Source of the DNA: Oculina patagonica
Lineage: Eukaryota
DNA length: 64,000 bases
NCBI RefSeq assembly: GCF_052425735.1
Contig: NC_135769.1
Span: forward strand, 23,312,001-23,376,000
Reading direction: 5' to 3'
The number at the start of each line of letters is the position of its first letter. Position 1 is the stretch's first letter. The position numbers and the translations under genes are program-made. Below the pieces are notes generated by a model that ran no database searches, was not told the DNA's origin, and saw nothing but the letters and a program-made list of their open reading frames with translations. Positions 17,692 through 18,746 of the stretch are shown piece by piece.

Positions 17692-18746
17692 TTACGTAAC
17701 TGAAAGATTTTGTACGGATACCATGTTTATATGTTTCTTAATATTTTGGCTTATACAGTGCTTCTGATAATAATAACGGTTTTTAATCTAGACTTTGTGG
17801 GGTGCGCGGCCGTTTTTACGCCCTATGCCTCTTCAATACGGTATTTTCTAGTGTTTATGCTGCAACAAAAAAGGTTACAAATGAAAAAGAAAATGGTATC
17901 AACCGACAGATCGCACGTTTTGCTTTGATGACAGGGGCTGCAATAGTCCAAATTTAAGTTAAGATGCATGTTATTCGGAAATATCCATTGGAACTCAAGT
18001 GCTTGATATGGATTACGTAACCTATTAGTCTATTACGCATTCAACGACGACAGAACTTGCAAATAACGCAATTCCGATTTCAGTATTTCCTCAGTAAAAT
18101 ATCTAAACAGTACATGAGTGCTCCGCTGAATGAAAACTAACTACCCACCTTTAAAGCCATTTGGGGTTCGTTGTTCTTTTCTCTGACTTTCGTGCAGGAA
18201 GGCTTTCAACTGAACAAACAACTTCGGTCCGAGCCTTTATAAGAGCGCGTCACGTGACACTGGCCTGGAGAATTTCTCGTGCACGTGCACGCGGCGCATT
18301 TACCTTGAGTTTTCTCCCGGTGCGTTTCAATTCACATAACAATCTCATGCACGTGTTGAGAACAATGAGCCTTTTAGCCAGCTGAAGGCTGAAGTCATGC
18401 AAAGAATAAACTAAATCTTTAGAGGTCTATGCGACACCTATTTGCGTGTTATAAAATGTAATCAGTCAAGGTAATCTTGCCGCGAATTTAATAAGTAAAA
18501 CATTCACGCCACGCTAAACGGCAATCGATTTCGAAGGCCCGGATCACGGGAACGCAGTTTAATACATCACGCGAAACCACTAGCAACACGTTTCTTTTCA
18601 CGTTGTCTGCAACTTTGTCACTTATGTAATATATTCATTACTTGATCATTACGTAACTTATCTGCGATCACCTTTATACATGGTCGCGTGCCCCACTAAA
18701 AGCAGAGGGTTGTTTGTAGATTACGTAATTTATTCCTATACGTAAC
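17692..18746 (-). promoter_or_regulatory. D-box (TTAYGTAA) / E-box (CACGTG) cluster with TATA box, putative SOUL promoter/enhancer
   Basis: TTACGTAA at 17692, 18013, 18649 and 18721; TTATGTAA at 18622; near-match at 18738. CACGTG at 18251, 18282 and 18350. Minus-strand TATAAA at 18236-18241 and a possible 5'UTR splice donor at about 18148. Confidence 0.6.

Follow-up and report, generated by a model that had tools for sequence, protein, structure and literature searches.

Within a 64,000-nucleotide stretch of the Oculina patagonica genome (hereafter the window), D-boxes (TTAYGTAA) and E-boxes (CACGTG) are clustered at the 5' end of a minus-strand SOUL/HEBP2-like gene, and our analyses suggest that window positions 17103-18760 are probably the 5' regulatory region of this gene, with its promoter, first exon and first intron. 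The clustering of the motifs is genuine and far beyond chance, and the conservation of its sites under selection, its enrichment and its single-locus status emerge from comparison with the genome, a paralogue and eight loci from other coral-like assemblies. We consider it likely that selection has maintained the region as a conserved promoter, from which a secreted heme-binding protein would be transcribed in the daytime under the control of PAR-bZIP-type factors bound to the D-boxes and of a bHLH factor bound to the E-box beside the TATA box.

A pattern search of the window located D-boxes at 17692, 18013, 18622, 18649 and 18721 and E-boxes at 18251, 18282 and 18350. An earlier sequence-only reading of this DNA, which had proposed a light- or clock-responsive enhancer upstream of SOUL, was accurate on every site that it listed, including a D-box near-match and a minus-strand TATAAA. 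Four of the D-boxes are exact copies of RTTACGTAAY, the PAR-bZIP consensus 10-mer, the fifth is TTATGTAA, and two further near-sites carry one mismatch each; the three E-boxes fall within 105 bp of one another and have D-boxes on both sides at distances of 230-470 bp. The window holds 10 distinct D-box sites, half of them (5/10) inside 1,055 bp, and in 1,000 dinucleotide-preserving shuffles of the window a stretch of this length held at most three D-boxes (observed, five) and at most four D- and E-boxes together (observed, eight), with 0 of the 1,000 reaching the observed cluster. In the genome as a whole (529 Mb), TTAYGTAA has 30,326 forward and 29,963 reverse matches, or about 0.09 distinct sites/kb, and about 0.17 clusters with at least five such sites would be expected; RTTACGTAAY has 2,537 sites, and four of them within 1,040 bp would be expected about 5e-5 times genome-wide. 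The enrichment over the genome background, which the sequence-only reading had put forward as a check on its proposal, thus holds for both the 8-mers and the 10-mers. Its remark that the motifs occur only sporadically elsewhere in the window is right for the D-boxes; of the E-boxes, a second triplet occupies 8514-8655. This second triplet (8514, 8562 and 8655) lies inside a palindromic repeat (region 8500-8700) resembling a miniature inverted-repeat transposable element (MITE) and carrying TCACGTGA and CCAAT boxes, so E-box clusters can be repeat-borne in this genome.

A genome search with positions 17600-18780 returned a single additional copy (71-82% identity) on contig C1, which lies directly 5' of a SOUL paralogue and whose homology continues into the exons; beyond C1, only the first 45 bases of the query match elsewhere, and those belong to a high-copy element. 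The multicopy repeat that, according to the sequence-only reading, would have undone its proposal is therefore not what is found, as there are only two copies and both are at SOUL promoters. Its description of the stretch as no recognizable transposon stands for the module, with two copies in 529 Mb, but has to be qualified in that the region is interrupted by one repeat (17442-17644) and bounded by another (18801-19093). The interrupting repeat has no counterpart in the C1 paralogue and represents an insertion between the D-box at 17692 and exon 2, outside the module. Seven of the eight motifs still match in the C1 copy, and the eighth is replaced by a new TTACGTAA some 30 bp off. Between the SOUL coding sequences of the window and C1, 24.8% of the 4-fold degenerate sites differ, and the neutral identity is therefore expected to be about 75%, whereas motif positions are identical to C1 in 55 of 58 cases (94.8%), as against 826 of 1,058 (78.1%) in the rest of the module (Fisher p = 6e-4); the D-box positions taken against non-core sequence give p = 0.003. 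The core of the module (18100-18499) is 86-90% identical to C1, and its flanks are 65-82% identical.

At C1:37.10 Mb (L002/L011-L013), as in foreign loci L014, L016, L052 and L053 and in protein matches P0006, P0011, P0013, P0020 and P0031-P0033, the last exon of one SOUL unit and the N-terminal part of the following unit share one open reading frame (ORF), with a linker between them. The paralogue and the foreign arrays look like multi-SOUL-domain genes under a single D/E-box promoter, whereas the SOUL gene of the window has a stop codon after its first domain. The apparently full-length matches P0013, P0020 and others were rejected as proteins, being prokaryote-style ORFs that cross SOUL units.

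Eight homologue loci of 20 kb each, found by a SOUL exon search in long-read assemblies of the ENA and in the Desmophyllum pertusum genome, were compared with the window by anchoring on the TATA box and the signal-peptide exon. Their SOUL domains are 47-76% identical to that of the window and to each other, and BLAST of the module against three of them (L014, L015 and L016) gave no meaningful matches. Five of the eight clearly carry a shared layout, in which a non-coding or mini first exon ending in a GT donor is followed by an intron of 0.9-3 kb, an acceptor stands directly before the ATGA(A/G)G... of the signal-peptide exon, and D-boxes are found upstream and, consistently, in intron 1. In the window and in C1, L014, L016 and L022, TATAAA is preceded at -15/-14 by the E-box form CACGTGAC, and in L051 its spacing to TATATAAA is larger by one base; the same CACGTGAC-TATA arrangement is also present in a transcript-derived contig (L019) of a further species. 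The first intronic D-box is placed at +221 to +306 from the TATA box and forms part of a composite element, TGAATGCGTAAT-N2-3-GTTACGTAAY, in the window, C1, L022, L016 and Desmophyllum L023; unit 3 of L053 also contains the composite, and L014 retains the D-box without the rest of it. The extended form of the second intronic D-box is CAGTTACGTAATCAAAG, and the extended TTACGTAATCAAA of this site occurs in 5 of 9 promoters as against 0 of 8 background pieces. In the foreign loci taken together, the 2.6 kb that precede the signal-peptide exon contain 0.77 D-boxes/kb, about seven times the 0.11/kb seen elsewhere (binomial p = 1.4e-9), and E-box density in the same intervals is 0.86/kb as against 0.23/kb (p = 9e-7). 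An unbiased k-mer count over nine promoters ranked TTACGTAA as the top 8-mer (9/9), with its extensions next, and found TGCACGTG, the form of E-box 2, in six of the nine. The loss of the motifs in orthologues, which had been named as a result that would speak against the proposal, is thus not seen, since position and flanks are conserved both in C1 and in the loci of the other assemblies.

Beside an upstream E-box, an extra footprint, TGCACGTG-N2-3-ATGTCATTTGAAACG, is present in L014 (~7320), L024 (~5078), L052 (~6894) and L053 (~12852), and window positions 18322-18355 hold a weaker version of it, CACGTG ... GAATTGAAACG. The Desmophyllum pertusum locus (L023; GCA_029204205.1, 4600-8650) retains the mini-exon ATGGCTAGTCTTAG/GT (here and below a slash marks an exon junction) and the composite intronic D-box; it has only two D-boxes, GATAAA takes the place of TATAAA, and the E-box at -15 is missing. 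This dark-water coral may carry a relaxed version of the module.

The gene model was built on the TATA-initiator geometry, the conserved mini-exon and the acceptor before the ATG, exon 1 being without an RNA contig, and according to it the gene would begin further upstream, with a mini-exon in which translation starts (Table 1). A TCAGTT initiator has its A at 18211, exactly 31 nt from the T of TATA, and the start codon of the predicted exon 1 is in good Kozak context (CCCCAAATGG; it reads ATGGCTTTAAAG on the minus strand). The GTGGGT donor of this exon (GT at 18148-18147) belongs to a pattern, ATGGCT...AG/GTGGGT, that is conserved in C1, L022 and Desmophyllum L023. A long polypyrimidine tract and TAG directly before the ATG at 17102 make a textbook acceptor, and an upstream exon is therefore expected; the same acceptor and ATG are found in all orthologous loci. 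The MALK codons of exon 1 are in frame with exon 2, and the resulting 268-aa product (MALK-MKLVFPLLVVLLVSTDA...), with a signal peptide and a single SOUL domain, is predicted to be a secreted single-domain SOUL protein. The Pfam SOUL family (PF04832) matches the ORF at 14983-15477 with E = 3.3e-39 (135 bits as against a cut-off of 27), and the nearest named homologue in a protein search is HEBP2 of Desmophyllum pertusum; an Atlas search brought up generic SOUL clusters only. With respect to the predicted transcription start site (TSS), three E-boxes and three D-boxes (plus one near-site) are upstream, and the D-boxes at 18013 and 17692 are intronic. What the sequence-only reading had called an upstream enhancer is hence probably a D-box/E-box regulatory module 5' of SOUL, as it proposed, but one that would also span exon 1 and intron 1, with two of the five D-boxes in the intron. 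RNA-like contigs from public runs cover 14805-15451 and 16777-17104, ending at 17104, and the 16777/15451 splice (GT..AG, minus strand) is seen in contigs of two runs; the SOUL gene is expressed, and its exon 2-3 splice is observed directly. The same contigs leave only a trace in 17649-17845, and repeat-type contigs are found among them at 17442-17644. For the O. patagonica TSS, exon 1 and exon 1-2 splice, we rely on the sequence itself: the TSS near 18210 that had been suggested earlier agrees with the predicted TATA-initiator geometry and the conserved mini-exon, the start site as such being a prediction. Transcript contigs of a relative start 28 nt before ATGGCGACT/ATGATTAAG... and encode MATMIKLILPVL... 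(MAT+MIKL...); they carry a homologous 5' exon adjoining the E-box-TATA and match the predicted MALK/MKLVF... junction.

Table 1. Features of the SOUL/HEBP2-like locus of Oculina patagonica (window positions; offsets are from the TATA box)
Feature	Position	Strand	Remarks
Near D-box TATACGTAAC	18736..18745		One mismatch; aligned place in C1 is a perfect GTTACGTAAT, with a shift of a few bases in a gapped stretch
Upstream D-box ATTACGTAAT	18720..18729		Canonical RTTACGTAAY; -487; paralogue has ATTACATAAT at the same place, still TTAYGTAA
Upstream D-box ATTACGTAAC	18648..18657		Canonical; -415; TTAYGTAA match retained in paralogue
Upstream D-box TTATGTAA	18622..18629	+	-388; lost in paralogue (TTATGTTA), extra TTACGTAA ~30 bp off instead
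E-box 3 (CACGTG)	18350..18355		-114; retained in paralogue; GAATTGAAACG ~15 nt nearer the gene (~18322-18335)
E-box 2 TGCACGTGCA	18282..18287		-46; retained in paralogue
E-box 1, 10-bp palindrome GTCACGTGAC	18249..18258		-15; 7 nt upstream of TATAAA
TATA box TATAAAGG of SOUL gene	TATAAA 18236-18241; TATAAAGG 18241-18234	-	TATAAAG(G/C)C conserved in orthologous loci
Predicted exon 1, 63 nt	18149..18211	-	TSS ~18211; 50-nt leader; start codon 18160-18158; encodes MALK
Intron 1, 1,046 nt	17103..18148	-	GT 18148-18147; AG 17104-17103; contains two D-boxes
Composite intronic element TGAATGCGTAAT...GGTTACGTAAT	18009..18047	-	D-box 18013-18020 (+221) and near-D-box half ATGCGTAAT (~18033-18041)
Second intronic D-box CAGTTACGTAATCAAAGTG	17683..17705	-	D-box 17692-17699; +542
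Exon 2	16777..17102	-	Signal peptide MKLVFPLLVVLLVSTDA, linker, start of SOUL domain; begins ATGAAG at 17102
Exon 3	14983..15451	-	Remainder of SOUL domain; stop codon 14985-14983
High-copy dispersed repeat within intron 1	17442..17644		At least 40 genomic matches, 93-100% identity to its last 45 bp
Dispersed repeat, distal bound of module	18801..19093		At least 40 copies, 78-87% identity; starts ~55 bp past the last D-type site

In the mechanism that we envisage, transcription would start at about 18211 from a core promoter in which 7 nt separate the E-box GTCACGTGAC from the TATA box and the TCAGTT initiator follows, and the 63-nt first exon with its start codon (MALK) would be spliced over the 1,046-nt intron to the ATGAAG exon at 17102. 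The 500 bp ahead of the TATA box hold another two E-boxes and three or four D-boxes, and these, together with the two footprinted D-boxes of intron 1, would provide binding sites for PAR-bZIP/NFIL3-type bZIP dimers on the D-boxes and for a bHLH factor, CLOCK:CYCLE or one of USF/MITF type, on the E-boxes. Both arms together would raise daytime transcription, through light or reactive oxygen species (ROS) and/or the circadian clock. By analogy, this is most likely the same logic as that demonstrated for zebrafish hebp2, the promoter of which, like that of soul5, has three D-boxes and one E-box, where mutating these motifs attenuates light induction and abolishes induction by H2O2 (PMC12561580). 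TEF and HLF activate the zebrafish hebp2 promoter, and cavefish cells have lost the response; in constant darkness (DD) the zebrafish gene is not driven by the clock, and zebrafish D-boxes respond to H2O2 and light (PMC12561580). The statement of the sequence-only reading that SOUL/hebp2 genes are among those induced by light in zebrafish is borne out by these data, since light and H2O2 act on both hebp2 and soul5 by way of D-boxes and an E-box.

In cnidarians, expression of HEBP2 (SOUL family) is highest by day in Nematostella and Acropora millepora, with 30 of 32 probes agreeing in the latter (PMC4476465), and Hydra HEBP2 is diel as well (PMC6407280). The HEBP2 of Euphyllia paradivisa is one of a small set of genes that are rhythmic both in light-dark cycles and in DD and in both symbiotic and aposymbiotic morphs, and Cry1, Cipc and Hlf are co-expressed with it there (PMC9481131). 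A missing diel response of SOUL had been named as evidence that would count against the proposal; diel or circadian HEBP2 expression is documented for these other cnidarians (PMC4476465, PMC6407280, PMC9481131), and the response expected of O. patagonica is extrapolated from them. The input may be light/ROS, as in zebrafish, the clock, as in mammals, or both, and the Euphyllia data from DD favour at least some clock input. In Aiptasia, which has four PAR-bZIP genes, clusters of D-boxes and E-boxes have been described in the promoters of light-induced cryptochromes, and an ancestral sunlight-responsive role of the D-box was proposed from that species (Gornik et al., bioRxiv 10.1101/2020.05.28.118018; PMC8097283). 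Our literature search found, in the library that it covered, no paper joining hebp2 and D-boxes in a cnidarian. The kind of element and the diel expression of HEBP2 are known, and the cis-regulatory link in cnidarians, with its close parallel to zebrafish hebp2, appears to be new.

The closest of the known systems is zebrafish hebp2/soul5 (Boiti et al. 2025, PMC12561580), which shares with the coral locus the SOUL/HEBP family and the clustering of D-boxes with a CACGTG E-box in the promoter/5'UTR region; both motif types are needed there and act together, a function shown in fish and presumed in the coral. The fish promoters differ in having three mostly non-canonical D-boxes and one E-box, whereas the coral module combines three E-boxes with two near-sites and five perfect D-box 8-mers, of which four extend to the canonical 10-mer, and has two of its D-boxes in intron 1. 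The zebrafish per2 light-responsive module and the cry1a D-box enhancers, cited in PMC12561580 and the Gornik preprint, likewise place D-boxes near E-boxes as a light-input element; they are compact, extending over tens of bp in clock genes, whereas the coral module spans about 1.1 kb around the predicted TSS of an effector gene. The AnthoCRY/CRY-II promoters of Aiptasia (Gornik et al.) are also anthozoan and have D- and E-boxes close to each other, no more than 1 kb from genes that light induces, but these are photoreceptor genes, and their sites were called with matrix tools in one species, whereas those of the coral SOUL gene are exact consensus matches with positional conservation over many loci. 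Mammalian clock-output D-box genes (DBP/TEF/HLF versus NFIL3) share the RTTAYGTAAY element, the factor family and a daytime phase set by E-box plus D-box; in mammals the D-box is purely clock-driven, and Euphyllia HEBP2 cycles in DD, whereas zebrafish hebp2 does not.

Several points weigh against the reading of the module as a light- or clock-driven PAR-bZIP/bHLH promoter. In the four runs that gave RNA-like contigs over 14300-20200, none lies on the predicted exon 1 or within 17846-18633. Outside the motifs and the core, identity to C1 is about 73%, near the neutral 75%, and the tandem units within the foreign loci are non-independent. The 27 matches to bZIP_2 (PF07716) in the genome are no more than candidate PAR-bZIPs, other bZIPs can also occupy TTACGTAA, bHLH factors of USF/MITF/MYC type can occupy CACGTGAC, and both the identity of the binding factors and a light or clock response in O. 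patagonica are predictions. The cryptochrome (CRY)/photolyase loci of the genome hold 10 D-boxes in 80 kb, which is near background overall and unlike the SOUL module. The coral SOUL protein has a signal peptide and is likened to fish hebp2 by family membership; vertebrate HEBP2 is cytosolic, unlike the coral protein with its signal peptide and N-terminal linker. With orthology between the secreted SOUL protein and vertebrate HEBP2 only a possibility, ancestral conservation and convergence are indistinguishable here.

Among the alternatives, the one that fares best is that the module is functional but acts as a general stress, ROS or xenobiotic promoter, with C/EBP-, ATF- or NFIL3-type bZIPs on TTACGTAA and USF or MITF/TFE on CACGTGAC, and with daytime expression secondary to hyperoxia or feeding. 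We regard this as unlikely, and it overlaps with a light- or clock-driven promoter rather than being mutually exclusive with it. Members of the bZIP and bHLH families are indistinguishable from sequence, GTCACGTGAC also fits USF- or TFE-type palindromes, the composite element contains a C/EBP-like half, ATGCGTAAT, and the H2O2 response of zebrafish D-boxes and the lack of clock drive of hebp2 in DD would suit such a promoter too (PMC12561580). On the other hand, four of the sites are exact matches to the PAR-bZIP consensus RTTACGTAAY, and in Euphyllia the rhythm of HEBP2, shared with Hlf and Cry1, continues in DD and is also present in aposymbiotic morphs (PMC9481131), which argues against a pure by-product of symbiont oxygen.

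It is very improbable that the module serves another transcript, either the plus-strand hydroxyacid-oxidase gene from about 22200 or an unannotated divergent RNA, with SOUL as a mere neighbour. A plus-strand TATAAG at 18237-18242, the start of the FMN_dh gene about 3.5 kb off and the predicted status of a TSS whose exon 1 has no RNA contig can be cited for it; however, C1 and the foreign loci show the same orientation and spacing, relative to SOUL, of the E-box, the TATA box, the mini-exon, the D-boxes and the signal-peptide exon, the called neighbour genes there have no FMN_dh domain, and a dispersed repeat lies between the module and the plus-strand gene. That the motifs are without function, arising by chance and persisting in the paralogue through recent duplication or gene conversion, is scarcely to be entertained: divergence between the paralogues at 4-fold sites is no more than about 25% and the module is near neutral identity outside its core, but chance would supply such a cluster only about 0.17 times (8-mers) or 5e-5 times (canonical 10-mers) per genome, loci without alignable similarity to the module have the motifs in corresponding positions, and the protein identities of 47-76% argue against the foreign contigs being recent copies of one locus. 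A low-copy mobile element bearing bZIP and bHLH sites can be set aside almost entirely, for although repeats flank and interrupt the module and the MITE-like element elsewhere in the window carries three E-boxes, the two genomic copies both fall within a larger SOUL duplication that includes exons, homology continues into exon 2, and no terminal repeats were noticed on reading the sequence, no repeat search having been run.

From an evolutionary point of view, HEBP2 is, with Cry1 and Hlf, among the very few genes that cycle daily in every cnidarian examined, and the wiring of this rhythm has not been described. The locus offers a sequence-defined answer, in the form of a TATA-adjacent E-box and canonical D-boxes footprinted across species, in an architecture that matches the one experimentally conferring light/ROS induction on zebrafish hebp2. 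The proposal of an ancestral sunlight-responsive D-box regulon, which has so far rested on Aiptasia CRY promoters, gains a directly testable case, for which the material would be a 1.7-kb fragment with defined sites and natural comparisons between shallow and deep corals and with Nematostella Clock mutants. A more far-reaching reading would be that PAR-bZIP D-box plus E-box transcription of SOUL/HEBP-type genes is an ancestral eumetazoan response to sunlight/ROS and the clock, kept from anthozoans to fish for more than 600 million years, that the double D-box of intron 1 (TGAATGCGTAAT-N2-3-GTTACGTAAY) is a fixed, deeply conserved non-coding element, and that the weakened Desmophyllum version (no E-box at -15, GATAAA, fewer D-boxes) parallels the loss in cavefish; we put this forward tentatively, as a possibility that is more doubtful than probable.

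Some further observations concern related elements in the same genome. D-box density as a genome-wide hallmark finds no support in the CRY/photolyase loci and was dropped. Six photolyase/cryptochrome N-terminal domains are arrayed at C5:37000-75000 (set L043-L050), and a separate CRY/photolyase gene at C1:32892012-32893865 is the sole one with three D-boxes within 1.65 kb upstream. A genome-wide search for TTACGTAA pairs 5-120 bp apart gave 106 places as against 242 for a reversed control pattern, many of them repeats or satellites. Compact D-box-E-box-D-box modules such as TTACGTAACAACACGTGCAATTACGTAA exist elsewhere, at C5:21171860-21171887, C4:19484406-19484470 and C4:50689268-50689365; when these three (L040-L042) were fetched, no nearby gene could be named. 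A tandem array of bZIP_2 domains, with at least 11 within 66 kb, lies at C11:4745068-4810767 and three more at C5:30.30-30.32 Mb, all of them candidate PAR-bZIPs at most. Within the window, the neighbouring hydroxyacid-oxidase (FMN_dh) exon at 25050-25919 reads SNTGGRQLD, and two long plus-strand ORFs of 860 and 559 aa at 969-5414, with gag-zinc-knuckle, protease/reverse transcriptase and integrase-like features, represent a copy of a long terminal repeat retrotransposon.

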